38,194 bases of DNA from Perkinsus chesapeaki ATCC PRA-425 (lineage: Eukaryota; Protista; Perkinsozoa): contig JAAPAO010000339.1 of NCBI GenBank assembly GCA_013115145.1, forward strand, positions 1-38,194, in the 5' to 3' direction. The notes beneath the pieces were generated by a model that saw nothing but the letters and a program-made list of their open reading frames with translations, was not told the DNA's origin and searched no databases. Positions 4,804-26,759 of the stretch are shown here, one piece after another (positions within the stretch are counted from its first letter, which is position 1; each line of letters begins with the position of its first letter). The position numbers and the translations under genes were made by a program.

Positions 4804-6766
4804 ATGAGCTCCGATAACGATTCGCTTAACAACGAGGACAGGCCTCAGGTGGTCTGGCTTGTCCCCGAGAAGTTCTGCTGGGTAGGTGCTGGAGTGGACC
4901 TGCGTTGGCGTGGATTCGAACGTATGTAGATCGCTAATGTGCCTACTACCTGTAAGTCCTGTGTGGATGGCGGCGGCAGTAGCTGTCACTCTGAGCCGTT
5001 GAAGAGCATCAAGAGAATGCACAGGCACCAGAGCCCAGGTGAGCCCTCCTGCGGTAGAGGGAGGAGGTAAGGCTGATGCTGATGTGCTAGGATCGGTGCA
5101 GCTTACTTCGGATGCGAAGGAGTTCATCGAGGCTAATGTGGGCAGTGAGACGGAGCTCTACTGTGTGGAGAACGACTCTGCCCTCAATTGTGCGATATAT
5201 GTCCACCAAGGCGTGGCTAGCAACAGACACTTCGGCCCGATGAGCTTCTGGCAGGTGAGGCTGCCTGTTCAGGGAGGCCGAGGAGATTGAGGCGTCCTCA
5301 TAGGTGTCCCGATTCTGTGACAGCCTAGAGTCGGAGCTGGCCACGGCGGCGGAGTCGTCTAAGGTACTCGTTATGGTAACATCGCCGTTCGCAGCGACGG
5401 CCTCGAACGCTGCGACGATGCTTATGTGCTATCTGGTTTTGAGGAAAGGCTTCTCCTGCGAGGAGACTCAGGAGAAGTTCTCCTCGGTCGACATTGCCGA
5501 CTTCCCCAACCCTTTCGTGTTCACGAGCACGCCTAAGGCAGCATCTCTCCGTCCTATTGACTGCGCGAGAGGTCTGCAGATCGCCAAGCAGATGGGGTGG
5601 TATCCTGACGTTGGACAGTGGAGGGCATTGAGGCTTAAGTACAGCGCTACCTGGGTGGTTCCGGGGCTCTTCCTGGCCATGCCGGATCCGGTTACTATCG
5701 ATGATGGTTTCAGCCGGACCAGTTTAATTAGCAAATCGGGTAGGCTGGCAGGGCGCGGCAAGAAGGGCAGTCGAGGGTTGGCAGATATAGACTCGGACGT
5801 CATGTCGGAGGCTCAGCAGCAGCAGCCGACCACACCGACAAGCCTGCCGAAGGCGGAGGAGGCGAGTGAGGTTGGTCTGGTGGACAAGTTACAGGAGCTC
5901 AAGGTGGGGATGATACTGAGGATTAACAAGATGCTAGAGAGAAATGATGAGACTCGTAATGATACCGCAGCCGGGGATCGAACTTGCATGGATGATATCT
6001 TAGGGTGGTATGACCCGGATGCGATATTGCCGGAAAGCATCGGTCACACAGACATCCCCATGGGCGATGGAGGGCTGCCTAGTGCTCAGATACTCACTAC
6101 TGCGTATAAGGCGATGACTGAGGTAGATCCACACAGCTGAATAGGGGGCAGGGTGGTGCTGCTCGTCAGACGCTGGAGAAGCGCCCTGATGCTGCTATAG
6201 CTCTGCACTGCCATGCTGGACTGGGACGCACTCTGGTCCTCATCGCTCATGCGATTGTCCACGCCCTTGGCTGGTGAGCCTCGTTGAGGGTTATGTTAGG
6301 CAGCAGCTGTGATGGTCTCAGGCCAGATGGGGAGTACGGTGCCTTGCATGGCTGGCTAAGGATTGTGAGGCCGGGAAGTTTGACGAGCATCCAGCAGGCG
6401 GAGTTTGTCCGTAACGGTTGTGAGTTGAGGGGAGGCTCCAAGGAGCTGGATGATGCTGTTGAGGGGTTCAGGAAGGCACTTTCCGGGCGTAGGTGGGGGA
6501 GTGTCATGGATGAGGATAGCAATCGGTATTCAGGTTTCAAGACGAAGCAAGCTAAGCCGACTCCATCTCCGAAACGGAAGACCTATTCCACTGATGAGAT
6601 TCAACCACCTGAGTCAAAGATTCGAGCACTCGCAGTTCCCCCGGCGAAACGTTCCTGTCTGCTGGCATCGGCGACGGCGGCGGCGGCAGAGACGGCCGGT
6701 TCTAATGTCCGAGTTAGTGAGGCCAGCACTGCTGTTGATGAGCACTTAGCATTTGATGAGTATTAA
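4804..6766 (+). CDS. CDC14: CDC14-family dual-specificity protein phosphatase (multi-exon)
   Basis: N-terminal domain motifs HFGPMS and NAATMLMCYL, then DCARGL, TWVVPGLFLAMPDP, DGGLP, catalytic loop LHCHAGLGRT (about 6205-6235) and WLRIVRPGS..QQ, all matching CDC14 consensus. Confidence 0.9.
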
Positions 6767-7067
6767 GGATATCTTAGCCTTCTCAGACTCCCATTGATTG
6801 TTCTCTAATTAACTGTCGGTCGTTGATGATGAGTGGTGTCGTCGACCAACACTAAAGTAGTCGTCATCACCGAGTGAGTGCTGCTGTTTTCGATTTTCCT
6901 TAATTATCACAACTCGTTGAGTTCATCAGTCAACCGCCCAGCACATCATGCTTCAGTGGAGTTTTCCGAACAAGTGGCGTTTTTCTTGCAATTTTCGTGC
7001 AATTTTTCGCTCTTACTGTCGTCGGCGTCATCCTTGTTACCGTGTTCGATTTAAGTCCGATTTTTCC

Positions 7068-8111
7068 ATGGGAAATTCTTGTTCTTCCTGCTTTGGCTCC
7101 ACCTCAACTCCTACACCACCGGCAGCTCGAAGCTCCAAGCCTGTTGAAGATATCCCCAAGGTTGTTTTGGAGACACCTAAGAAGGAGGCAGAGCAGCAGC
7201 AGCCGGTTGCTGCTGCTAAGGAAGCTCCTGAGCCAGTTAAGGCCGAGACTACCGCTACCAGCGTTCCAGTTGCAGAGCCTACTTCTGCGGTGAAGACGAC
7301 TGCTGTTGAGAGCAGTCCAGTCGCCACCACTGCCGCCCCTACACCGGTGCCGAAACCGGCCCCAATGGTCGAGGAAGAAGTCCCTGCTGTGAAGGTGGCC
7401 GAACCAGCTGTTGTTGAGGAGCCAGTGGCTAGCACTGTTGCCAAGGAGCCAGTACCGGCTGCTGCTGCTGTGGTGGAAGAGGATGCTCCAAAGGTTATGG
7501 AGACCACCACTGTAACTGCTCATATTGTAGATGAGGTGAAGCCAATTGAAGAGGCAACGACTAAACCAGCGCCAGAGCCCGCTGCTGTCATCGCTGAGGA
7601 GGCGAAGCCGGCCGAGGCTGCTCCGAAAGAGAAGCCTGTCGAGGCTGAAAAGGAAACCAAGTCGGTTGAAGCGGCTGCTCCTGTTGAGGAAGCCATGCCG
7701 GCACCGGCAGTGGAGACTTCTGAGAAGCCCACGGAGAAGACAGAGGTTAAGTTGGAGATCGAGAAGGATGCTGTTAAGGAAGAGCAGTCTAACGCAACTG
7801 CTGCCAGCAGTCAGCCGGAGCAGAAGGAGAGGCTGATGGAGGCCTTGGTCCAGAATATCCAGCGGAAGCAGGCCGAACAGCAGATACGGCAGCTCCTATA
7901 CAGCCAGGTTCAAACGCAGCAACAGGCGATGGAGAAGGAGAATAAGCCAACTAAGTCTGGAAAGAAGCATAATCATCATAAGGCTGCTGAAGTCAGCCCT
8001 GACAGATCGGCCACCGCAACTGTGGGGCAATCTACAAAGAAGAGCAAGCAGAGCCAAAAGGAACGCAGGGCAAGACAGAAGGCGGCCAAGGCGGCCAAGC
8101 GCGTCCTTTAA
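7068..8111 (+). CDS. Single-exon 347-aa Ala/Glu/Pro-rich protein with N-myristoylation/palmitoylation motif
   Basis: Starts MGNSCSSCFG (Gly2, Cys5, Cys8), then a long acidic low-complexity region, a Gln-rich helical segment and a basic C-terminal tail. Confidence 0.8.
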   Translation: MGNSCSSCFGSTSTPTPPAARSSKPVEDIPKVVLETPKKEAEQQQPVAAAKEAPEPVKAETTATSVPVAEPTSAVKTTAVESSPVATTAAPTPVPKPAPMVEEEVPAVKVAEPAVVEEPVASTVAKEPVPAAAAVVEEDAPKVMETTTVTAHIVDEVKPIEEATTKPAPEPAAVIAEEAKPAEAAPKEKPVEAEKETKSVEAAAPVEEAMPAPAVETSEKPTEKTEVKLEIEKDAVKEEQSNATAASSQPEQKERLMEALVQNIQRKQAEQQIRQLLYSQVQTQQQAMEKENKPTKSGKKHNHHKAAEVSPDRSATATVGQSTKKSKQSQKERRARQKAAKAAKRVL

Positions 8112-8442: not shown

Positions 8443-11400
8443 ATGCGTTGGCTGTTCGGCGGCAATAGAAGGGACGATGAGGACTGGGAGGATCTCATGG
8501 AGAGCTCGACAACGCTGATGTCGGCCACAGTAGATCCGCAAGGTAGTCCTGGGAAGCTGGATTGGCGGCATCCGGCGAAGGCTTAGGCGAAGGTCCCATC
8601 AGCTTGAAATCTCCGAAGGATACCCGCACACGCGTACTGGTGTACGGGTCACCTTTCGCTGAGATGATGGCTGATAAGGCTGCTGCCGAGGACAGACACG
8701 AGGCTACTTCTATAGGCGGACATAGGTTGAGTGTATCTAGGGGCTCCTTTGGGTTGAGAGGAGGGTCCCCATTGGAAACTACATCACAGCAGGCAGCAGT
8801 AAGCAAGGGCGTCCCACGCCGGGCTTCCACTCCTTGGTAGGCTGCTCGATGGCCGCCGCCGCCGCCAGTCAGGGATGTGGTGGTATCAGCTCCGGTAGTG
8901 CTGGCTGGAGGGGTTCTCAGCAGCTGCAGGATCGATAAGGTGGCAGAGGGGGCTCGGGCAGTGCTATCATGGATAGGTCTCTGTGGGGGACGGTGGGCAT
9001 GTCCTGCTGCTGTGCTCTCAAGGACGTTTGTACGCGTTTGGCCGGAACGATCATGGCCAATGTGGAGTCGGACATTTCCGAGAAGTGGTCCACGAGGCAG
9101 GTTCGTAGAGGACTTCGTGGCACATGCCTCCGCGGTAGGTAACCCCGGTCCGTCTGCCTGGGGAGTACTCAGTGTCTACTATGGCCACTGGAGCCTTCCA
9201 CAGTGTGTGTTTGGGGGCCAAGGGCGGCGGGGGCGGCGGCCAGGTGGGATGTTGGCCATCATCGGCCGAGTTAAGGATACCCGCAGCTAGGTCTATGTCT
9301 GGGGCCACTCTGACTGCTTGGCTCTTAGCAGTTCTGAGTGGAAGGAGGCCGCCGCTGGTGAGGCTGGACGCTATGCATGCAGCAGCAGCCTTCTTCCTGT
9401 CTAGGTCGCAGTAAAGGCCATATCAGTGTCCCAACCAGCCTGGCAGCTTTGGGGGGCTCCTCAGTAGTGGGGGCCATTGCAGCTTGCGAAAGGACCAGCT
9501 ATGCTCTTGTTATACGGAAAGTGATGACAGCTATGGACTACCAGTCAGCAACAACTTTTCTCACAGATGGTATCATCCGCGTTGATGACCGGCTGCAGGC
9601 CAAGGGACTTTAAATGGGCCACGGTGAAGTCAGCACTAGTGGAGCAGATGCCTGCTGATGGTGTCTCATTGGCGGTCCGGCTGGTTCATCGGGGACAACT
9701 GTTGTGTCGGGAGGAGGTCGGAATATCCATCGGTAGTGCGGTATGCTGGATGGGTGTGCAGGGTCCACAGTGTGTCAGAGGTGTCTGGGGGAACTGGTGG
9801 ACTGGAGCTGTCTGGTCGATACTTCCACAACGGGGAGTTCGCCGAGAGCCGGCCTGTGTTCATGCGGAGAATGGCTCACTCGGCAGGGCATGAGCCGGCC
9901 TGGATCTACTTCAAGGACGGTGGTGGAGAGAGGAGGCAATGGGTACGGTACAGCGGGGGCCGACACCTCTGATGATATTATAGGTCATTTCGACAGCGGC
10001 ACCAGGAACTGAAGCTGGCTTCTTCTTGGTCCTGAGCGGACAGCCGTTGAGCAGTCCGCTGGAGCTGTGTAAGAAAGAAGGGGCGCCGACAGTAGCCAGT
10101 GTCGGGCTTGCTCTGGTCGGGGACAGTATTTATCTGCGGCGAGATGACAGTGAAAGCCATGGTCTGGATGGTCGATATGACCGGATGGACGGGTTGATCG
10201 ATGGCACCGTGGGGTATGCTCTATCAGGCGGCAGCGGGCCAGGGACAGTGCTGGTGCCGAATATGGCCAAGGGGAGATGGGAAATTCGCCGTGGGGCTAC
10301 CATGGCTGCATTCAGCACAGATGCCTTCAACTGTGCTCTGCCGTGGTGCATGTCCCAGAGTATCGGCCTGTGGTATCGGTCCAGTGGTGGAGTCTTCCGG
10401 GTGGAAGCGGTAGTGGACGGTGTTGTATCTTCTGATGGTTTGGTGGGAGAGGATACTAGTGATGGTTTGGCTATCGAGCTGGAGGGTATGGTGAGATGCT
10501 GTTTGCTCTTGCATTGGGGTCTGTCGGCTTTGGGCCAACTACTTCCCGTGCCGAAGTTGCTTCATGAGTTCCCCAGCGATACTGAAATCGTCGATATCGC
10601 CGCTGGTGGGCATTTTGGTCTTGCCGCGGATCGAACCGGCGCCGTTTACGGTTGGGGGGATGGGACCTATGGGGAGTTACTGTCATCCAAGGGTGCCGCG
10701 GTGAGGAGGTTGGACGCTCTTGTCGGGTTCAAGGCCAGACAGGTCTCCTGTGGGGCTCGGCATGCCCTGGTTGTAGATGAACAGGGTAGTGTGGTGGCCT
10801 TTGGGGACAACACAGCTGGTCAGTGTGGCTTGGGCAGTAGGGAGGGGCATAGAGTCAAGAGAGCCAAGGTGATTCCTGTGGGCGGGGCGTGCCTCCACGG
10901 TGGAGGTACTGCGGCCTGTGGTGGACGGCATAGTGCTCTGGTGACGGCAGAGGGAAGGCTGTTCACTTGGGGCCATGGTGGGGACGGCAAACTGATACAT
11001 GTCAAGGAGAAGTATGGCCCTAGGTCGGGTATGGAGGAGGAGGAGAGGGTCGAAGGGGGTGACTGGGAGGAGCAGGAGGAGGAGGGAGGCAATAGGCGGC
11101 CTGCTGGGGTGGCCATCAGAAGTGGCCTCAAGGCTGCGGTGCATCGGCCACGGATGGTCTACGCATTGACACATTTGAAGGTAGTAAGGGGCGGCTGTCA
11201 GGGCCAATGGTCCTGGGTGTAGGTACAGGCCGTGGGGCTTGGCGCGGACTCCACAGTGGTGGTAGTGGGGGACAGTACTGCTCTTGAAGGTGTCGTTGGC
11301 TCTGTTGATGGCAGCACGCCGGGGAGCGCGAGCCCCTTGTCGGTATCGAGGAGCAGCAATCCCTTCCGCTCTCGGTTATTTGCTAGTGAGACCGTTGGAT

Positions 11401-13343: not shown

Positions 13344-15331
13344 ATGTCATCATTTGCTTTACCGTCGTACATAGCTTCGGCCGTGCCTCCCTGGCATTCC
13401 TTTTCCTGGCCAGCCTGGCTCACCACTTGGCCGTCGCTGGGGAGTCTGCCGATACTTCATCGAATTCATCTTCCTCATGTTTTGACCAGTGCTCGTCGCA
13501 GCACTCTAATTGGCATCGGCGGCGTGACGCTTCTCTGCGGGTCGGCCTTCTGGTACCTGCGGAAGCGTCGGCAGGCGTTTTGGCGGAATGCAAGCATGTT
13601 CGTATCACGGAGCGATATGACGCGGGACGAGATCGAGCGGGCGTGTCGGATGATGGCTCTGCCGCAGCTCTCGAAGCGGCCCCTGCATAAAAAGTAGGCT
13701 TCGATCGGCTTCTCCCAGTAGTAGCACAGCAGCAGTGTGGAAGCAGTTGGTACCTGCCCGTAGCGAGGGCGTAGTGCCAGGGGACTGGCTTGACTGGCAA
13801 AATTGAGTGATGATCGGAGGGTATGAGATAGTAGTCATTTTACATTGGTGATGATAGGAACGATGCTTTTCTGCATGCTTTCTGTTCATATGGATTCTAC
13901 CATATAAAGGCATGGGGGTGCAATGGGGCTTTTCATAATAATGCATTCGCGCAACTTCACGCTTTAGCTCTTATTAAGAAGCCTTCTGGAGATCGTCTCC
14001 GATGTCGCCCTGTTCGGTTTGCTTTGCGATGGACTAGTTGGTCCTGCAAATGAAGCTGCAAGTTAGGGGCTTCACCGATATCGCCTACCTTGAGCGTTTC
14101 GTTACTTTTCAGATCGTTCCTTGTGGTGGGCTGCGGTGGCCTGGCCAATACCTGTGCTACCTACATAGCGGCATGTCTTCTGCCTGGCTGTCGCATCACT
14201 CTCATCGATGATGACAAAGTGGAGGCCTCCAACCTCCAGCGACAACACCAGCTTCATTCGGTCAAGGACGTGGGCCACAAGAAGGCAGAGTCGGCCCGAG
14301 TGGCTTGTCGCCGCGTTGCCATGAAGGGTGTTGCGGTGGAGTCGGCGCCGGGCATGCTCACCAAGACCAACGTTCGAGACCTTGTGGGGAAGCATGACGT
14401 CATTCTGGACTGCACTGACTGCCCAGCAACCAGATGGCTCTTGTCCTCGGCCTGCGCGACAGCTCGACGCCCTTTGGTTTCGGGCGCTGCTATGCAGTGG
14501 TCCGGCCAGGTCACGGTGTATTGCAGCGGGGAGGACGGTCCCTGTATGCGCTGTGTTTTTCCCGAGCCACCGCCGACTGAGGCTGGCTGTCGAGGCGGCT
14601 GCGATGTCATGGGAGTGTTCCCTCCTTTGCCCGGCATGATCGGTTGTGTGATGGCCTCCGAGGCTCTCAAGCTCGCGCTAATGGACGGACCTCAGCTGGA
14701 GGAGGCCAGCCTCTCGGGAAAGCTGTTGCTCGTGGACATGCTCGACGGTGGCCTGTCGACGAGAACTGTGGCATTAAAGCGTCGCCCGGACTGCCCTGTG
14801 TGCGGGTGGACTGAGGAGGCGGCGGCCCAAGATCGAAGCGATGCGAGCAGCCTTCGAGAGGATGCTGATGCAGTTCAAGCTCCAACTGTTAATAGTATCG
14901 GCCCCAAGCAGGTAGGTCGAGTGGTGCTCTCGTGGTGGTGGTGGTATGGATGGCTTCAGTTGCGTCATCTGATGCTCGAAAGCCCATCTGCGGCGTGTCT
15001 GGTGATAGACGTTCGCCCGAAGCCTCAGTTTGATATGGTTCATCTGAGGGGGAGCGTTAATGTCCCTTATGAGGACTCCCAGGCGTTCATCGACACAGTG
15101 AAGTCCCTACTAGAGGAGCGACGGCCGAACACCACGGTGGTTTGTTGCCGGAAAGGTGGGCATTTTGCCCGACCTTGACTGAGAGCAGTGTGATTCTTGT
15201 TAGGTAACGACAGCCGGCTTGCCGTCTGCGCTCTGCAAAAGTCGTTTAAGTACCTCCTTAACTTGGACGGTGGCATAATGCAGGCGGCAAAGGAGCTGGG
15301 CGTCGAGGGCAAGCAACTGTTCGTTCCCTAA
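13344..15331 (+). CDS. MOCS3: UBA4/MOCS3-type adenylyltransferase-sulfurtransferase (ThiF/MoeB E1-like domain plus rhodanese) with N-terminal extension
   Basis: MTRDEIERACRM resembles the YSRQ helix. Also present: VVGCGGL, DDDKVEASNLQRQ, DCTD, Zn motifs CMRC and CPVC, GVFPPLPGMIGCVMASEALK, rhodanese IDVRPKPQFDMVHLRGSVNVP, and the spliced active-site loop CCRKG|NDS. Confidence 0.85.
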
Positions 15332-15740: not shown

Positions 15741-18700
15741 ATGGCCTATAATGAGCGGGCCAACGACGCACTTACGGACGCGATCGAAAGGTCACAGCAG
15801 AAGAACTGCCACAGCCAAGGCCGGTAAAGATATTTTAGAGGTTGACTGGTAACCAAGGCCTTCCGGCAGATACCTGTCATTTGAGATACAGAATGCCAGC
15901 ACCCGTAATGTGTCGGATGATGACTTGGTGGAATACTGCAATATGTGGTATAATAAGGAGAGGGATAAGTTCGAAGACGGCTGGCGTCCTGAGATAGGCA
16001 CACCAACTGATACCGGAGGTGGGTTATTGCTTCTAGTTGTTCAACGAAGGCTTAAGCTTGTTAATATTTATTACTGTTGCTCTCTGAACTTTACGTCATG
16101 GCGGTATTATGTTGATATTACCTTGTTATTGTAGATGATATCACATGGCAGCTCCCTGCAGTATTCTATTTGCTTTGACCGTAATCGCAGTAGATGCCTT
16201 TAGATTGTGTACACTGATGTAGCACAGGGCGCCCGAATCCTAGTCTATGCCCCTGCGCACCATATTCAACCTTGGAAAACTCTTTTTATCCTTACCAAGG
16301 AGGTGGCATTAATACGACTCTGAGCACAAAAGATACGGTACTATCGGTAATGATGCCCACTGTCAACAGGTCACGGTGGCTGGCAGCCCGATCGATCTGG
16401 AATAATGCTGCTTAGTGGCTACAACAGCGGAGCGTATGGTGTGAAGATTCAAGGCAGGGTCGAGAGCGTTCGGGCGATGGGGGTCATTGGAGCCGGCTTT
16501 GCCCTTCAGATTCCTACCCAGGTAGCCCGCTGTTCTCGGCTACTCGTTGTCAATGTTATTTAGGTTGCCATGGTGTGCCCAGCGGCGAGTATGTGGTGGG
16601 ACTGGTTGGAGAAGCTAGGAATAGTAGCAGGCTTGGTGGGCGGCGCGGTGGGATGGTGTGACTTAGATTAGGGATCGACCACCGGCTACTAGAGTGAAGA
16701 GGGAGCCTGTCGAGAAGGGGAAGAACTCTAAGTAGGCACCAGCGCTGAGCACGGCTTTCATTTTGCTGTTGTTGTTGTATATGCGTTGTCTTACGGTTTG
16801 ATGATATACAGTAGTGTGCGTCAAATTGGTATCAACTAGAGGCGCTTTTATTTCAAACTTCGAGTATCAGATATATCAATCCTTATGGTCTCAGGAGGTT
16901 GTGTACAGTTGTGATCGATTGGCGCATGCATCACATTCAGCAGCGACCTATCCGCACTCGTACGGATAAGGGGCAAGCTGTGAATGTCGAATGCTGCTGT
17001 GTCTAGAATGTCGGCACGCCGGCACGGTCTCAGTGAAATTTAGCACCATTGCCAGCTTCTCGATTCTTGCTGTATCTTCGTCATTACCGTCCATCACAAA
17101 GTACCACGTATCGGTTGCAACAACGAAGAGGCAGTCGAGTGTCACTGACCAACGGTCTGTGCTGACCAACCTGGATTCTAAGGTACCGAGGATATTATCA
17201 AGACGACACTGCCAAGACTTCCATAGCAGTCAAGAACTACACACAGGCCATGTGGACGGAGCGATGCCGAGCGCAGGTGATGCGAGTGGCTGAGGGGTTA
17301 ATGGATTGGTTTGCAGGTGGAGTTTGCCCGGAAGGATATGGAGGTTCGAAGGCCAGACTGGACGGATGTTGAGGGAAGTGAAGCCCAACTGCGGTGAGTG
17401 GATTGACTTGTCGCTGCAAGTTTTGTTGAAGGCGTTTCATCCGTACGTGGAACTCAATTGAGATATTTCCATAAAGAAATATATAATTCCTTTCGATAGT
17501 CGGGAAGGATGTAATAAAGCCTCGCACACGTCAGTCTACCCATCGGTTCAGCTTTTAGCAGGACGGCGAAGGTATTCGGCTGTCGGGTCAGGTACGAGAA
17601 GATGTTTGAGAAGGTTAGGCAGTCGTATCGGGGCGAGGCATACATCCGTGCGGAGTTGGACTTTGGTGTCAACCTAACAACCGGGAATATGATATGGTAC
17701 GGGAAGGATGGGCAGATGGGATTCACTTCACTGCTTAGGTACTGCACTCAGATTTGGCCGGATGCTGTGCTGGACCGTCTTGGCACTAGATGGCGTCCAA
17801 GATTCTGCGCCGTGGCTCGGCGAAACTATCATGACTCTCGATATCAAGGGGATAAAGGAGGAGTATATATTGCTGATGAGACGTATAGGGCAGTGGCGTG
17901 TAAGGGAAGGACTGGAGAGGGGCTGCTGCCGTATCGGAGTAGATAGACTGGTTATCCTAGGCCAGCTCTGATCCAACCGAGGGCATGGGGTAGAGTATGT
18001 CGATCGTAGAATTCGATTTGTGTGCTTTTTGTTCATTTATCCGGCAAACTTTCAATACTGATAGAAAGTTTCAATATCCGCTAAATATTAAAATTAAGTA
18101 TGGAGTTGTTTCGTTATGGGTTATTTCCTATCATAAAGCTATCAAGGTAAAAGCTGCTAAGGGTTTCAAGGGATGCTGGGACCTTCGAGCTTCACAGAAG
18201 TCTGCTCTTCGGGGGAGCTGAAAATTATCCAAATTAGAAATTTTAATGAGAACTATTTTCTGGTGAAAAAGCATCGAGTTGCATTGCCTCCAGGAGCATT
18301 TGGTATTCCTCTACGCCTCCCCGGATGGGTGGTACAGTTATTTAAGGTATCGGATCTCCTGCGCTGTGTCGGGCAGTGATGCCTATCCTGGCGGCGATGG
18401 CAGCTGGCATACCCAATGCGAGGATGGTGGCTCAGAATGCCCCTCAGTTTGATATATTTTGGGAGTATGTCGGATGGAATAAAAATATGCCTCCACCAGA
18501 GGCCCCATCAGGTAGGGTTGGAAATCCTTTTGTCATCTGATGGCGGTGGACAGGCAAGCCCGGTGGCAGTGGAGTGTGGCGGAACTCTCAGGCATATGAT
18601 GCTGACAATAACAGCGATGACACCTTCATGGCTCAACTGTAGGAGAGGGGGAACAGTGGCTGATAGAGAATGGTAGGTTCAAGCAAGAAAATGACGCTTT

Positions 18701-20192
18701 GCTGGAGCTGCAGTGGTATAACGCTGGAGAGTATCACAGGACCAATGGCATGTGGTGTGGAGGAGAATGCATCCCAGGGGTATCATGGAGTAGGGATGAC
18801 TTTGTTGATAATCTAATGTTATGGTGGAGTGATGCTATTGTTGAGGAGGTATGGGGATTATATAATAGAAGGGATATTCATAATGTTGTTCAGGTTGGTA
18901 AGTTCCGTTATCGCCCTAACTTTATGGACAAAGGAGGCCTGGTATTGGACATAGGTGGTGCATGGACCTCGGTGCAATCTAAGGAAGTTTGGGCGCAGGT
19001 GAGTCCATCAAATGCCCTCAGTGTAGGCATTACTCTGTCAGGCAATGATGTGCATGCTTAGCACTATTATGGCCGGCATTCCCTCCGAGATCGCCGCCTT
19101 GCTGCCATCCAGCGATCCTTTCTGGGACTTCATCGTGGACAAGGAGGGGCCGGAGGTGGTCAGGGCCCAACGAGCGTAGGTTGCTGGTTGCCATTGCTCT
19201 TATAAGGACTGAGGCTCAGGAAGATCAGGGCAGCCCGCAATAGGAGGTTTGGTGTGTCCTGGCAAGAACAGCGGTTTACAAAGCTCCACGGGAACCGTAG
19301 TATGTTTAGGCCGGCGGTAGGTGGGGAGTTTGTAGCGCTTGGAATTACACTGTGCAGTTGCCGACATGGGAAGGGACGTCGGAGTCGAGCCGGCCTCGAC
19401 CGGAAGCTAGTGAGGTGGGGAGGCAGGCCAGGGAGGAGACGGAGACTAGGACATGGAGATCGGAGAAGGTGGAGAAGGATGATAAAAAAGCAAAGCCAAG
19501 TAATGGAGAACGGCGGCGCTGTACTAGTACTGTAACTGTGAAGATGTTGCTGTGGAGTAGTGGGATCTCTTAAGGCACTGCTTTAGGTGGGACGGTATAG
19601 ACAATAGAATACTATATTTATGAAGCGCATATTAGTACGATAACCCTGCTGAATCCTATTATTCTTATAGTCAGTGCTTGCGGCCTACAGGGCCTATTGT
19701 ACACCCTCCAGGAGGGGCCCTCCTGCCTTGAGGTATACTACTATTACTACTGCGATAGAACTTGCAGTTCAGTGTGGTATCACTAGAGTGGATTATGATC
19801 GGGCGTAATGATGTCTTAGCCTTCAGAGCCTTCCTCCTCAAGACCACCGCGCCCATCAGGATCGGGCTTCAGCGGCGGCCTGCCCAGCAACTGCCCTCAG
19901 GCTGCCGCAGTACCGGCGAACGAGGGCCGAGATGTCCGGCAGTTCAGTGGAATGGTCATCGCTGTTTTGGACTACTTGCACAACGAACGTGATGTCGCCT
20001 GCATGAGGAGGGGCGAGAAATTTTACTGCCAGTAAGTTGAACTCGTACTCGCGCCGTATTGAGGAGGGTGACTGCTCCTTCAGACAAGAGACGCAGAATC
20101 TGTTCCTCGGCCGAAAGGAGGGTTCCGAGGCTTGCCTGTGGCTCCCTAAGTTCGTGGTTACTGGTGACCTCGGGGGCCTGAGGGGTGGATAG
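15741..20192 (+). CDS. Tandem-array paralogue 1: three internal repeats, SH3-like domain, C-terminal LRGG
   Basis: Hand-spliced, with exons collinear to copies 2 and 3. Starts MAYNERANDALTDAI and ends WLPKFVVTGDLGGLRGG* (TAG 20190-20192). Confidence 0.8.
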
Positions 20193-20321
20193 ATAAATTG
20201 ACTTGCTTGTTCCTATCACTGCCGGTGTACCTGTTTTTTCATTTGCATTGTTCTGCTTTTGTTATCAGAAGGGGAGGCTCAGTGATGGGGTGGTGGTTAC
20301 GCTCGTGTTTGGTTTTCTTTA

Positions 20322-23285
20322 ATGGCATACAACGCAAAGGCGAACGAAGTATTGGAGCATGCGTTGAAGACAGCACATGAGAAGCATGCCTCTAGTCTGG
20401 GCAGGTAGCCATGATAGGGAGAGCGACATCATTATACTACTTGTTGGATAGTACCATAGAATGACTGATTAGGCCGTAAACCCTGTTGACTCTGGATTAC
20501 GGTATAGTACTGATACCCAAAATGATACCCAGCTCGGGCGCACACTACCTCGTGGCCAGAATTTTCAGGCCGACATCCACTCTCTTGCTGCTTAGGTATC
20601 TCTCGTTCGATATTCAAAATGCGGGAGTGCGCAAGGTGACGTTGGAGGAGCTGTTGACGTATTGCAATAGGTGGTACAGTAAGGACATCGATAAGTTCGA
20701 GGACGCTTGGAAGCCGGAGATCGGTCCTAGAAATGACACAGGTGATGTCTTGAGCTTCTTTCTGACACCTCTAGCTGTTCAGGAAGGGGATGGCAGCCGG
20801 ACAGGTCTGGAATACAGTTGTTGAGCGGCCATTATTGCGGCGCTTGGGGTGTTAAAATCCAGGGCAAGATGGAGAGCGTTCGAGCCATGGCGGTGATCGG
20901 AGCAGGGTTCGCTCTGAACATCCCGGCCGAGGTGAGGGCTCGCTGCTGGCCGGGGAGGCGCAGGTGGGGGTCAGATCGCTATGGTGTGCCCGGCAGCAGC
21001 GGAATGGTGGGACTGGCTGGAGAAGCTTGGGCTGGTAGGGTTGGCGTGCTGGTGGGAGGGAGGCTTCGTGTAGGTGAGGGATCGGCCACCGGCTACTAGA
21101 GTGGTCCAGGAGATGGAGGAGAAGGGCGGCAGGACGAAGTAGGAGGCCAAGGAGGGGGGACTAGAGGCTTTCATTGGCTTCGCTGGGCAGGTATAAAGCG
21201 AAGTACGACGATAAGGAGGCGAAGACGTCACGGGCAGTGAAGAACTATATGGACCCAATGCGATCAGATAGGAACGCTCAAATGGTGGGGCAGGCGGCAG
21301 ACGGCGGGGCGGCTAGGTATAGTCCTTCCTGCTGTCAGGTTGAACTGGCCCGCCGAAATCTGGAGGTATGCAGGCCGAGCTGGCCCCATGTGGAGGGGGA
21401 GGAGGCGATGACGAAGTAGGGTGGGCTCTTGAGGGAAGGCAGCACCGGCGGTATCGCATGACAGGTATCGTAGTATGCATGCGAGGATAAGACAGTCTTA
21501 CCGAGGAGAGGACTACATCCGGGCACCGATGGACCATGGACTTACTGTGACTAGTGGGAATGTTATATGGCAAGCATCGTTTCGGTGGATGTTAGTTACC
21601 TTTAATGAAGGTACTGTATGCAGATTTGGCCAGATGCGGTGCTCGATAAGTTGGGCACGAGGTGGCGGCCGAGGTTTAGCGCAGTGGCGAGGGGGAAGAC
21701 ACATGATTACGGAGTGCAGGGGGAGAAAGGTGGCGTGTATGTCGCTGATGAGCTCCACAATGCTGTGGCATGTAGACTAGGGACGATTTTGGTGGGCGGG
21801 ATGGGTTCTGTTAGGCATCGGCTCTCCTATATTGTGCCGGGCTGTGATGCCGATACTGGCGGCGATGGCCGCGGGGATACCTGACGCGAAGATGGTGGCC
21901 AATTGCGCTCCTGAGTTTGATATATTTTGGGAGTATGTTGGATGGAATAAACACATGCCTCCACCAGAGGCCCCTCCAGGTAGCCCAAGGAAGGATTCTT
22001 TGGCAGGTGATGGTGGCATTGGGTAGGTAAGCCGGACGGCACGGGCAAGTGGCGGAATTCGGCAGCTTACGATGCCGAGAACAATGAGGACGACACTTTC
22101 ATGGCCACCCTGTACCCTCATTCGCGGCCTGGTGTGCGCCAGTGGGATCGATCAGATTTATGCAGGAGAATGACGCCCTACTGGAGCAGCTGTGGTGCAG
22201 TGTGGGGGAGTATAACAGGACGGCTGGCTACTGGACCGGAGGCAACTGCAACCCTGGAGTCTCATGGAGCCGAGATGATTTCGTTGACAATCTTATGTTG
22301 TGGTGGCCGTTTGCCTTTATCGAGGAGGTGCCGTAATTGTGGAGCGCTGTATTTCTTTGCCTTTGGACAGGTCGGCCGGTTCCGATATCGCCCAGAGTTC
22401 ATGGACAAGGGTGGCCTCAGTCTGGACGTGGGCGGCTACTACACCTGTGTGCAGACCAAGGAGGCCTGGGCTAGGGTACCATTCGCATGGCTCCCTGTGG
22501 GGTACTGTCGAATCAGGCAATGATGTGTATGTTGAGCTCTATCATCTGCGGTATACCTGCCGAGATAGCTGCATTGCTGCCGGCCTGTGACCCTTTCTGG
22601 GACCTAGTCATCGATACGAAGGGGCCAGAGGCAGTGAGAGCTCAACGAGAGTGAGCCAGGAGGAGGAGGAGGAGATGGTGAATAGTGGTGCTTCAGGAAT
22701 ATCCGAGATGCTCGAGATAGAAGGTTTGGTGAAGCCTGGCAGAGGCAACGCTTTTATAAGATTTACGGCAGCACCTCAGAATTCAGGCCATCAGTAGGTC
22801 GGACTGCTGGTTGTACTGTAACAGATGGTTGCTAGTTGCCGAGGCCTCGTAGGGGTGGTGATAGCAGCGGTGTCCGGTCTGGTAGTGAGTGGCATAAGAA
22901 GGATGAGAAAAGCAAGCCTAAAGGAGTATCTGATAAAAGTATAACTTGAGCTGTGGCTATCGTGAACCTCAATCGTGTTAGAGCCACCGAAGGTCGCCCA
23001 GAGCAGTAGCAGTGGTAGCCAGCAGGCTGATGACGTCCGGATCTACACCGAGGTTGTGTTCGCCGCTATGGACTACTTCCACAATCAGTCAGATGTAGCT
23101 CAGATGAAGAAGGGCGACAAGTTTTACTGCCAGTAGAATCCCTGCTATATCCACTTTACCACTTTTCTATCGAAAGATACGAGACGTCAGACCTGTACCT
23201 CGGCACGAAGGCTGGTGAGAGCCGTCAGCTTTGGTTGCCCAAGTTCGTCGTGACCGGCAATGTCTGTGGCGTCCGGGGCGGCTAG
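20322..23285 (+). CDS. Tandem-array paralogue 2: three internal repeats, SH3-like domain, C-terminal VRGG
   Basis: Starts MAYNAKANEVLEHAL, shares intron positions with copies 1 and 3, and ends WLPKFVVTGNVCGVRGG* (TAG 23283-23285). Confidence 0.8.
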
Positions 23286-23488
23286 CTAGTTGATCTAAAT
23301 TGGGTGAGCATGCTTGGCAGCTGTGTTTCTCGACCGCTGGTGATCTGCGTCTCGCGGGGCGCATCTTCGGCACGGTGGTGATTCATTTTTTGTGTCAGTG
23401 GTTGCACAATGAGCACGTTCATGCAAGTCTTTGTCGCGCGCCACGAAACTCTTCCGTTCAGTTTTTCTATCGACTTGTTGTTGTCGTG

Positions 23489-26400
23489 ATGTCTTACAGT
23501 GAGAAGGCTAACAGCGCTCTCCTCGACGCTCTGGATAAGGCCAGAAGGAACGCTGAGAACAGCCAAGGAAAGTAGGCCATTTGACTCGGCAAATGTGAAA
23601 ATGATTGTTACCGTTAGTATACGGTCAATATAATATTTCTAGATGACACGTACTGTATGCATCATTGACATATTTTTATTAGTATAGAGTCTCTTCTGAT
23701 TAGATTGTTTATAATTTGTCGCATCCGCCACTGCCTGGTTCTCTTATACCTGCGGCGCTGCTGTCCTGTGGTCCTGATGACATTGCATAGCCTTCCTGTT
23801 CAACTTCACTGCAGTCTCTGTACAGGTACCTCTCATTTGAGATTCAAGGGGCTGCCAGACGTAAAGTGGATGAGAGTGACCTAGTGGCTTACTGCAATGT
23901 ATGGTATAAGATCGAGAGGGACAAGTTCGAGGAGGGCTGGCGTCCCGAGATCGGCAAGACGACCGAATGCGGTGTGTTGTGGGTGCCGGCTTGGGCCCTT
24001 TTTGTAGCGTCCCTCAGGTCGTGGATGGCAGACGGACAGGACCGGTATCTTCCTTCTGAGCAGCCACAGCACAGGGGCGTGGGGCCTCAAGGTGCAAGGC
24101 CGGGTCGAGAGCGTCCGGGCAATGGGCGTGATTGGTGCTGGTTACGCCTTGGGCATCTCTCCTAATGTAAGCTCCGTGGTGTTATCGAACTTGACAACTG
24201 CTCTAGGCTGCGATGGTATGCCCGGCCGCCAGCGATTGGTGGGACTGGCTGGAAGAGCTCAATCTGGTGCGCGGACGATCCCTCCTTTGGGCGTCACGTT
24301 TCCGCAGGTCCGAGATCGTCCGCCAGCTACTATGGTCAAGAGACAGCCCGATGAGAAGGGGAAGAGGGCCAAGTGGGCAGCAGCCGCAACTGTTCCTCCC
24401 ATCTCCGCCCATGGTCGGTACAGGTATCGCTCATACACCCAGGACTCGACAGCGAAGACCTCGGTAGCTGTGAGGCAGTATAAGAATATTATGTGGACCG
24501 ACAAGTGCCGTCAGCATGTAGGTGTGGTGGAGGGGGCAGCGGAGCCTTGGATGGTGTGTTGTAGGTTGACGCTGCCAGGAGGGACATAGAGACCTGTCCA
24601 CCACAGTGGAAGAGGATGGAAGGCCAAGCTGCCCAGAAGAAGTAGGCCTGTCGATTCTGTGGGGGGTTTTAGTGTTGTTAGGTATGAACAGATGTTCCAG
24701 ATGGTGCAGGGTTCGTATCAAGGTGGTGACTACATCCGAGCTGAGCTGGATTATGGACTTAAGATCACCACAGGCAACCTGATATGGTAATAACACATGT
24801 CTCCGCTCATCAACTGCCATTGCATACATTTAAGTGAGACCATATCGTTCTCCGCTCATGTCGGTATAGCTTGATAGTACTCACTCCAAGGACTCAGCTA
24901 TCACTCCGTGGAAGCTCAGACTTACTTGTTTTATTATTATCAGACTCGCTCAGCTCAGCCGGTCTCAGAGGGACTGTTTCGCTTATGTCTGGTGTAACGG
25001 CTTTCCTTATGAATGTGCCGCTTTTCTCAGGTACTGCCAGCAGATTTGGCCAGATTGCGTTCTAGATAAGCTTGGCACCAGATGGCGACCTCGGACCAGT
25101 ACTGTGGCCTGGAAGACTAAGCAGAAAGATTCACGCTACTCTGGAGACAAGGGAGGGGTCTATCTGCCCGACGACACCCATAAGGCCGTCGCTTGTGGGG
25201 AGATCATAGCCCAAGTCAGACGGACGGTCCCCGTTAGGTATCGGCACACCGGCTATGTGTCGGGCAGTGATGCCTATCCTGGCGGCAATTGCAGCGGGCA
25301 TTCCAGACGCTAAGATGGTGGCTCAGAATGCCCCTCAGTTCGATATTTTTTGGGAGTATGTCGGATGGAATAAAAATATGCCTCCACCGGAAGTCCCCAG
25401 CGGTAAGCCTCTATTTTTTTCACGCCGCATGAGCTACTGCTGCTTTATAGAGAAGCCCAGCGGCTGTGGGGCTTGGAGGCGCAGTAGGGCCTATGATGAG
25501 GAGAACGTCGATGACGATGACTTCATGGCCAGACTGTAGGCCGGGCGGGGTGGCTGAGGGCGATGGGCTGGGCAGGTTTAAGAGGGAGAATGACGCTATG
25601 CTGGAGCTGCAATGGTATAATGTGGGGGAGTATAACAGGACTAACGGTCAATGGTGTGGAGGGGAATGCATCCCAGGGGTATCATGGAGTAGGGATGACT
25701 TTGTTGATAATCTAATGTTATGGTGGAGTGATGCTATTGTTGAGGAGGTATGGGGATTATGTAATAGAAGGGATATTCATAATGTTGTTCAGGTTGGAAG
25801 ATTCCGTTATCGCCCTAACTTTATGGACAAAGGAGGGCTGGTATTGGATATAGGTGGTGCCTACACTTCTCTGCAGAGCAAGGAGGCATGGGCTCAGGTA
25901 AGCGTCTCCTTCAACTCCAAAGCTAACTGCTTCTTCTTCTCGACTAGGCGATGATGTGCATGCTTGGCTCCATTATGGCCGGCATACCTGCTGAGATCGC
26001 CGCGCTTATCCCCGCCAGCGATCCTTTCTGGGACTACATATGCGATAAAGAGGGCCCGGAGGTTGTCAGGATCCAGCGATCGTAGGGCCGCTGCCGCCAA
26101 CAAGAGGAGACGGTCTGTTGTGTCAGAAAAATCAGAGCTGCTCGAGATGCACGTTTTGGGGCTGACTGGCAGACTGAGAGGTTCAAGAGGGAGAGCAAAG
26201 GCAGCGGCGGTAGCGCCTTCCAGCCACGGGTAGGTCCAGGGGGCAGTGGTGGTGGTTACTGATGCTTAGGTAGCGAGTGGCGCAAGCTCCAGCCACCAGA
26301 GGGATGAGGAAAATTCTCCTATCGAGGAGACCAAGTACGAGAAAGCAAAACCGAGCTCCGCTGACGCTGGCGGTGGGAAGTCTCCTGAGAAGAGTGGGCT

Positions 26401-26759
26401 CGGACCAGGAGTGACGAGCTGTAAGTGTTTTTTCAGAGCCGCCTGCCAGCAGCGCGCCGAAGATCCCCTCGTCTCCGCCGCCCATCCCTCAGAACTACGC
26501 AGAAGTCTGGGAATGCAGCGGCACTGTTGTGGCCAAGCTCAGCTACAGCCACGGTAACCCCGAATACGCTACGATAAAGTGCGGTGAGAAGTTTCACTGC
26601 AAGTGAGGCTCTTGGGAACTGCTGGCGGCGGGTGCAGAGTCGATCAGGTTCGAAGCTCCGATGCTTTATTATGGCACGATTGAGGACGGCCAGGAGGAGC
26701 AATGGCTGCCGAAGTATGTGGTCACCGCCATTCCGCGAGGAGATATTCGTGGCGCGTGA
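23489..26759 (+). CDS. Tandem-array paralogue 3: three internal repeats, SH3-like domain, C-terminal IRGA
   Basis: Starts MSYSEKANSALLDAL and ends WLPKYVVTAIPRGDIRGA* (TGA 26757-26759). Confidence 0.8.

Follow-up and report, generated by a model that had tools for sequence, protein, structure and literature searches.

The window analysed here is a stretch of 38,194 nucleotides from the clam parasite Perkinsus chesapeaki ATCC PRA-425 (GenBank assembly GCA_013115145.1, contig JAAPAO010000339.1, positions 1 to 38,194 of the forward strand), and the subject of this account is a tandem array of three related genes, A, B and C, at positions 15741-26759. A tblastn self-comparison of the region between 15.5 and 27 kb revealed three collinear copies on the plus strand, to which all coordinates below refer, and direct-repeat families show the same three-fold pattern with a start-to-start spacing of about 3.2-4.7 kb. 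The raw open reading frame (ORF) track of the array shows fragments only. Gene models were assembled from conserved reading-frame blocks together with the GT...AG boundaries that flank them, and explicit splicing of these predicted models gave one complete ORF per gene, with 18 exons and 17 introns in each.

Gene A spans 15741-20192 and encodes 719 amino acids (exons 15741-15823, 15870-16018, 16370-16521, 16564-16623, 16667-16731, 17183-17276, 17317-17393, 17592-17696, 17739-17899, 18347-18511, 18554-18638, 18677-18848, 18894-18998, 19042-19175, 19220-19316, 19358-19499, 19827-20031 and 20084-20192). After a spacer of 129 bp comes gene B, 20322-23285, with 686 amino acids (exons 20322-20404, 20596-20741, 20783-20931, 20975-21034, 21074-21138, 21191-21284, 21339-21415, 21465-21569, 21611-21771, 21815-21979, 22027-22111, 22156-22327, 22371-22475, 22517-22650, 22697-22793, 22836-22938, 22982-23132 and 23177-23285), and after a further 203 bp gene C, 23489-26759, with 702 amino acids (exons 23489-23571, 23826-23971, 24018-24166, 24207-24266, 24308-24372, 24424-24517, 24565-24641, 24682-24786, 25031-25194, 25238-25402, 25451-25535, 25576-25747, 25793-25897, 25948-26081, 26127-26229, 26270-26393, 26437-26602 and 26648-26759). 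Copy A is present in GenBank as the hypothetical protein FOL47_006089 (P0026), whose 708-amino-acid model equals the present one except at the acceptor of exon 17, a difference of 11 amino acids. A literature search with six locus tags and accessions returned no paper. An initial annotation, made from the letters of the DNA, had proposed three complete collinear genes here, and its limits for all three and both spacers were matched exactly; its size estimate of 650-750 amino acids covers every copy, under either model of A, and its alveolate placement was right, the genus being Perkinsus.

The introns, which are spliceosomal, follow a common plan. Their positions and phases agree among A, B and C at 17 of 17 sites (2,1,0,0,2,0,2,2,1,1,2,0,0,2,0,1,2), as the shared intron positions of the initial annotation had anticipated, and 43 of the 51 are only 38-54 nucleotides long, the other eight measuring 191-451. 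Gene A has five of these long introns (351, 451, 198, 447 and 327 nucleotides) among short ones of 38-52, gene C has two, and gene B has one, intron 1 of 191 nucleotides, the remainder being 39-54. The long introns occupy positions at which the other copies have short ones. No similarity was found between the eight and one another or the rest of the window, which rules out their origin as inserted repeats with shared sequence. GT-AG boundaries are used throughout with the exception of intron 8 of gene B (21570-21610), the sole GC-AG intron (GCAAGC...AAG), where A and C, with position and phase unchanged, have GT donors.

One intron deserves particular care. Intron 12 is 45 nucleotides long, in frame and free of stops in both A (18849-18893) and C (25748-25792), and might be taken for coding sequence, but it must be spliced because its 43-nucleotide equivalent in B (22328-22370) shifts the reading frame. 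The junction is also ungapped in all 15 intronless relatives described below, and the protein of Perkinsus marinus likewise lacks those 15 residues. At nine of the 14 junctions in the conserved core every intronless environmental relative aligns without an insertion or deletion, and the least certain junction in gene C is the donor of its intron 16.

The triple module and the end domain

Each protein contains three modules of about 150-180 amino acids. Module 1 is encoded by exons 1-5 (A 15741-16731, B 20322-21138, C 23489-24372), where matches to the hidden Markov model of the unit are also found, module 2 by exons 6-10 (A 17183-18511, B 21191-21979, C 24424-25402), and module 3, the best conserved, by exons 11-14 (A 18554-19175, B 22027-22650, C 25451-26081). 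Compared with hhalign, modules 1 and 2 match with a probability of 98.8% (E 6.5e-16), modules 1 and 3 at 98.4% (E 6.5e-14) and modules 2 and 3 at 98.4% (E 5.7e-14), so the three thirds of the conserved region are homologous, and the triple internal repeat noticed in the initial annotation rests on E values of 6e-14 to 6e-16. When the units are aligned no introns line up among the three modules, which we read as meaning that the intron pattern is no record of the internal triplication.

The N-terminal helix motif M.Y..KAN..L..A, also recognised early, is present. An alignment of 54 modules gives the signature YC..WW ... G..RWRP ... DKGG(I/L) ... QG ... AL.P..A....GIPP.IA...P....FWD, which module 2 carries as TRWRPR, GDKGGVY and VMPILAAMAAGIP...FDIFWEY. 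The RWRP, DKGG, GIP and FWD positions are conserved in all three modules, and the 12 residues that are invariant in 19 divergent sequences (S437, W448, R461, K469, G470, G471, G478, G503, A509, L511, F518 and W519) all lie in module 3.

An AlphaFold2 model of module 3, built with the 54-unit alignment, reached a predicted local distance difference test score (pLDDT) of 91.6 and a predicted template modelling score (pTM) of 0.85, with secondary structure in the order H-H-E-H-E-E-E-E-H-H-H. It consists of a helical hairpin, a strand, a helix, four strands and a helix, followed by two further helices that carry the G-I-P...F-W-D signature, and DSSP places the central elements at E44-47, H56-66, E70-73, E78-82, E89-92, E98-102 and H105-120. 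The core as modelled thus has the beta-alpha-beta4-alpha order in two layers that defines the TBP-like fold in SCOP, a fold under which TBP, domain IV of the phosphohexomutases, the RNase H3 N-domain, KA1, DUF302 and Bet v 1/START are placed. The likeness to TBP-like domains extends to the element order E-H-E-E-E-E-H and, for TBP itself, to the use of the domain in tandem internal repeats; however, TBP has two copies and not three, the present module adds the N-terminal hairpin and the C-terminal helices with a GIP...FWD signature of their own, and no sequence signal joins them; the resemblance shown is one of topology.

A model of the whole of copy A, built with 19 family sequences, is good for residues 1-560. 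The N-terminus is hydrophilic and nothing like a signal peptide. After module 3 comes a basic helix (residues 528-570, isoelectric point (pI) 12, helical in the model), the end of which, encoded by exon 15 (A 19220-19316, B 22697-22793, C 26127-26229), bears the R.AR..RFG..WQ..RF motif that had been picked out from the DNA; it is conserved in A, B and C and persists as R..R.R..R in the environmental relatives. The divergent charged linker that had been described next was also found. It is rich in K, E, S and P, is encoded in part by exon 16 (A 19358-19499, B 22836-22938, C 26270-26393; nucleotide identity 52-54%) and, in copy A, occupies residues 570-663, which are disordered in the model with pLDDT below 50.

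Exons 17-18 (A 19827-20192, B 22982-23285, C 26437-26759) encode the remainder of the linker, a small beta domain modelled at the end of the protein, and a short tail that ends as ...GDLGGLRGG* in A, ...GNVCGVRGG* in B and ...AIPRGDIRGA* in C. The end domain corresponds to the SH3-like domain of the initial annotation, with the qualification that "SH3-like" describes the fold of the barrel and implies no family membership. In its favour the last 60 or so residues have an ALYDY-like start (AVLDY, AAMDY), a K/R-G-D/E-K-F turn and a W-L-P-K-[FY]-V-V end, a disordered linker precedes the domain, an arrangement found in many adaptors, and the language-model clusters nearest to the whole protein are SH3, which serves as a lead only. 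Yet hmmscan of the C-terminal 79-87 residues of six members gave no SH3 family (Pfam clan CL0010) at E<=10, scans of full-length members likewise found none, a low-confidence helix takes the place of the first strand in the model, the typical WW dipeptide is absent from the end domain, and the barrel matches Spt5 KOW and SH3 domains equally well. Two indirect points argue against the SH3-like exons belonging to separate genes: the models that GenBank has for A, and for the orthologues in P. marinus and P. olseni, join them to the same gene, and in the intronless environmental relatives the core and the SH3-like end lie within one uninterrupted ORF.

The family had been called unrecognised, and this has stood up to searches of several kinds, none of which gave a full-length match to a characterised family. 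Ten full-length members matched zero Pfam families at E<=0.1, Pfam searches with exon pieces of the array genes gave nothing apart from a sub-threshold DUF6211 match, and a family profile found nothing below E 0.5 among PDB sequences. Word-indexed homologue searches (P0001; alignment A3) returned only Perkinsus proteins, and no language-model look-alikes of the module were found. With both the whole model and a single module, neither Foldseek against the PDB, AlphaFold DB clusters and BFVD nor the VIA-align wide search and the ESM Atlas shape search gave a significant match. Besides Perkinsus relatives the fold searches returned only weak generic alpha/beta matches, the recurrent ones being PGM domain IV (phosphohexomutase), TBP, the RNase H3 N-domain, KA1, the C-terminal domains of CPSF73/100 and IntS9/11, DUF302, ZipA-C and Bet v 1/START. 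By these sequence and model comparisons both family and module are new, at the level of the protein family and of the domain, with no detectable known relative. Weak matches to the module core (E about 0.03, probability 0.84-0.99) come from three AlphaFold DB entries (A0A7S1F639, A0A7S1R8S9 and A0A1Q9DYN7), of which two are protist proteins named "SH3 domain-containing protein" (Fragment) and one is a RING protein from Symbiodinium; these may be distant single-module relatives.

Distribution and descent

With one exon as the query, 18 matches were obtained among 1.84 billion representative proteins, the best of them a hypothetical protein of P. marinus. The members found come from three Perkinsus species, P. 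chesapeaki, P. marinus and P. olseni, and from ENA, JGI and Logan assemblies, which contribute about 15 representative proteins. The environmental contigs are gene-dense and intronless, and each has one family gene with three modules. On three of the four contigs examined (L002, L005 and L006) Sec63, with DnaJ and Sec63 domains, lies downstream of the family gene; on two of these three, genes for DHHC, IP5 2-kinase, cullin and Mnd1 come next in that order, a conserved microsynteny. One environmental contig also carries a tyrosyl-tRNA synthetase that is 76-78% identical to that of Perkinsus versus about 70% for chromerids and apicomplexans (among named organisms), and given this affinity the environmental contigs probably come from uncultured relatives of Perkinsus. 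What follows the core varies by clade: one lacks the SH3-like end, and a second has an extra domain of about 200 amino acids, with a linker rich in W-G/S/N/D repeats in five members.

Between the copies in the window, protein identity is 64.5% for A and B, 63.9% for A and C and 57.3% for B and C. Synonymous divergence (pS) is 0.69-0.75, which is saturated, versus a nonsynonymous divergence (pN) of 0.24-0.30, so that in every pair pN is much the smaller; over the linker pN climbs to about the level of pS. Exons are 60-90% identical in nucleotides, and the short introns are at the level of shuffled sequence. From the saturated synonymous sites and the introns at shuffled level it follows that the copies are old and under purifying selection, the latter as had been claimed for them from the DNA. 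A single tract departs from this pattern. Over 300 nucleotides A (18672-18971) and C (25571-25870) are 90% identical; intron 12 within it is 98% identical between A and C, the exception to the shuffled level of every other intron, and in exons 12-14 A shares 82-90% of its nucleotides with C versus 70-74% with B, with pS there falling to 0.44. On this comparison of the sequences the tract is one local gene conversion between A and C.

In a maximum-likelihood tree all Perkinsus sequences form one clade (support 100/99), within which each copy pairs with its own P. marinus or P. olseni orthologue at 82-84.5% identity; for example, the orthologue of gene B in P. marinus is PMAR019652 (84.5% identical) and that of gene C in P. 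olseni is FOL46_007950 (84.2%). The order of the P. marinus locus is identical, with a ThiF/rhodanese gene followed by A, B and C. The triplication therefore predates the split of the species and all three copies have been maintained, so that sequence and gene order together show an origin in the Perkinsus stem lineage and retention since then under purifying selection. Besides the 819-kb contig, P. marinus also has B-like and C-like genes (PMAR019652 and PMAR019653) on a contig of 180,977 bp, which probably represents either another haplotype or a duplication in the assembly.

Possible roles of the proteins

The structural and evolutionary description of the three-copy family, whose proteins are modular, strongly conserved and look soluble, can be taken as nearly certain. 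As to mechanism, a role as non-enzymatic binding scaffolds, in the cytoplasm or nucleus, is put forward tentatively, by analogy of topology and architecture, as the less probable part of the account. The triple module would be a ligand-binding platform for protein or nucleic acid, as domains of TBP-like topology often are, the flexible linker would carry short linear motifs, expanded to tryptophan repeats in some relatives, and the terminal barrel would dock a peptide partner. Since the linker and barrel are the diverged parts, the paralogues would probably differ in partner or timing. The recurrent weak structural matches are consistent with such a role, all being to beta-alpha-beta4-alpha binding domains, and no catalytic family was detected in the Pfam or PDB sequence searches. 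Ancient tandem paralogues with a scaffold role is the best explanation overall, and we give it an even chance of being right.

Several points weigh against it. The core is acidic overall, with a pI of 5.3, which disfavours nucleic-acid binding by the core; an active site would be an equally good reading of the invariant polar residues S437, D440, R461 and K469 in module 3; and each module has an Ala/Gly/Met-rich helix that is hydrophobic enough to score as a membrane helix. The packing of the modules is uncertain in the model of copy A (pTM 0.57), and the splice junctions of the three genes are predicted, indirectly, from sequence, the GenBank models, the shared phases and the intronless relatives.

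An RNA-silencing or mRNA-decay scaffold resembling GW182 would be a more specific proposal, in which tryptophan motifs of the disordered region would bind Argonaute or CCR4-NOT while the modules and barrel act as an anchor. GW182/TNRC6 proteins likewise combine structured domains with a long disordered region, and five environmental relatives (P0006, P0007, P0010, P0013 and P0014) have 16-26 tryptophans, or 3.5-5.9%, in the disordered region after the core, most of them in repeated G/S/N/D/T/Q contexts such as SDWGS, QAWGG, TQWDT and DDWNG. Tryptophan composition of this kind is typical of the GW/WG "Ago hooks", and the fit of the end barrel to Spt5 KOW domains can be counted on the same side. 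However, the feature is no constant of the family, as the copies in the window have only 0-2 linker tryptophans and one environmental clade (P0009, P0011 and P0019) has none; no domain is held in common with GW182/TNRC6, and tryptophan-based motifs also serve in adaptor and coat binding. The proposal is accordingly regarded as unlikely.

Equally improbable is that the proteins are enzymes or binders of small molecules, with the polar residues of module 3 forming a pocket like that of the phosphate-binding domain IV of phosphohexomutases and modules 1 and 2 degenerate. The confinement of the twelve invariant residues to module 3 over 19 divergent sequences speaks for it, as does the recurrence of PGM domain IV among the best structural matches, but there is no Pfam or PDB sequence signal, and the conservation of RWRP, DKGG, GIP and FWD in all three modules looks structural, unlike a single active site.

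The membrane would offer another setting, with the three Ala/Gly/Met-rich helices, one per module, crossing or inserting into it; the top 19-residue Kyte-Doolittle window is 1.7-1.9 in each copy and falls on helices of the ...VMPILAAMAAGIP... type. In the AlphaFold2 model this helix instead lies against the beta-sheet of the module it belongs to, at pLDDT above 90, no signal peptide is present, the helices are short and broken by G-I-P, and three crossings would place homologous modules on opposite sides of the membrane, all of which leaves the idea very improbable.

A proposal that we hold to be just as improbable draws on the gene that precedes the array. About 560 bp upstream, on the same strand, is a ThiF and rhodanese gene of the Uba4/MOCS3 E1-like type (main exon 14090-15178; Pfam ThiF 1.9e-49, Rhodanese 3.4e-07), and the same gene precedes the array in P. 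marinus (L001 8183-9569). If the RGG tails were adenylated or thiocarboxylated by this E1, the proteins would be modifiers or sulfur carriers with an SH3 fold, comparable to the partnership of Urm1/MoaD/ThiS with Uba4/MOCS3/MoeB/ThiF, the points of likeness being the E1-like gene next to the array on the same strand and the free C-terminal ...RGG of some copies. Right at the stop codon A ends in LRGG and B in VRGG, the latter kept in P. marinus, and C of P. olseni ends in SRGG. The terminal Gly-Gly is not conserved among orthologues, however: read directly from the DNA, A of P. marinus ends in LRRE, and C ends in IRGA in P. chesapeaki and SRGA in P. marinus. The model gives the end domain an SH3/KOW-like barrel where the known carriers have a beta-grasp, no fold search of the family gave a beta-grasp match, and those carriers have about 100 amino acids versus about 700 here. 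Outside the genus the adjacency is not kept, as no E1 gene stands beside the family gene on any of the four environmental contigs examined, Sec63 being found downstream on three of them, and no environmental relative has a GG end; synteny among three congeneric species is to be expected anyway, and we take the neighbouring E1 to be an ordinary housekeeping enzyme that activates Urm1/MOCS2A. A narrower form, in which just the RGG-ended copies (B in two species, A in P. chesapeaki and C in P. olseni) are substrates of the neighbouring E1 through an end domain that has an SH3 fold and is not a beta-grasp, seems to us a shade less probable still; were it true, large Perkinsus proteins that are C-terminally adenylated, thiocarboxylated or conjugated would be a new class of E1 client.

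Least tenable is the notion of one functional gene with two decaying duplicates or an annotation artefact, to which the GC donor in B and the fragmented ORF track might be thought to point but which is already contradicted, on the sequence evidence, by three uninterrupted ORFs with identical intron phases, by pN far below pS in every pair and by an orthologue of 82-84.5% identity for each copy in another species.

Significance and other genes of the window

The scaffold proposal aside, the array adds to protein diversity a domain of about 150 amino acids that always occurs in three tandem copies, in a family without relatives detectable by sequence or structure. The family is apparently restricted to the Perkinsus branch of the alveolates, a branch to which major parasites of oysters and clams belong, and might be of use as a lineage-specific marker or diagnostic target, and a fold predicted with confidence and without neighbours makes a good target for structure determination. 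The locus also illustrates Perkinsus gene structure cleanly, 2 kb of coding sequence being divided by seventeen introns of mostly about 40-50 nucleotides, and it shows an old, selected tandem triplication with a single local gene conversion. Its importance has a limit, since orphan families are common in protists and the weight of this one rests on a functional role that is here drawn by analogy.

Elsewhere in the window, all on the plus strand, an ORF of 387 amino acids at 6948-8111 is of low complexity, rich in Ala, Pro, Glu, Val and Lys, and has no Pfam match. The ORF at 5304-6140 corresponds to the N-terminal half of dual-specificity phosphatases of the Cdc14 type (Pfam DSPn 3.8e-07), and that at 10026-11222 encodes RCC1 repeats (Pfam RCC1_2 3.4e-22, RCC1 4.9e-14).

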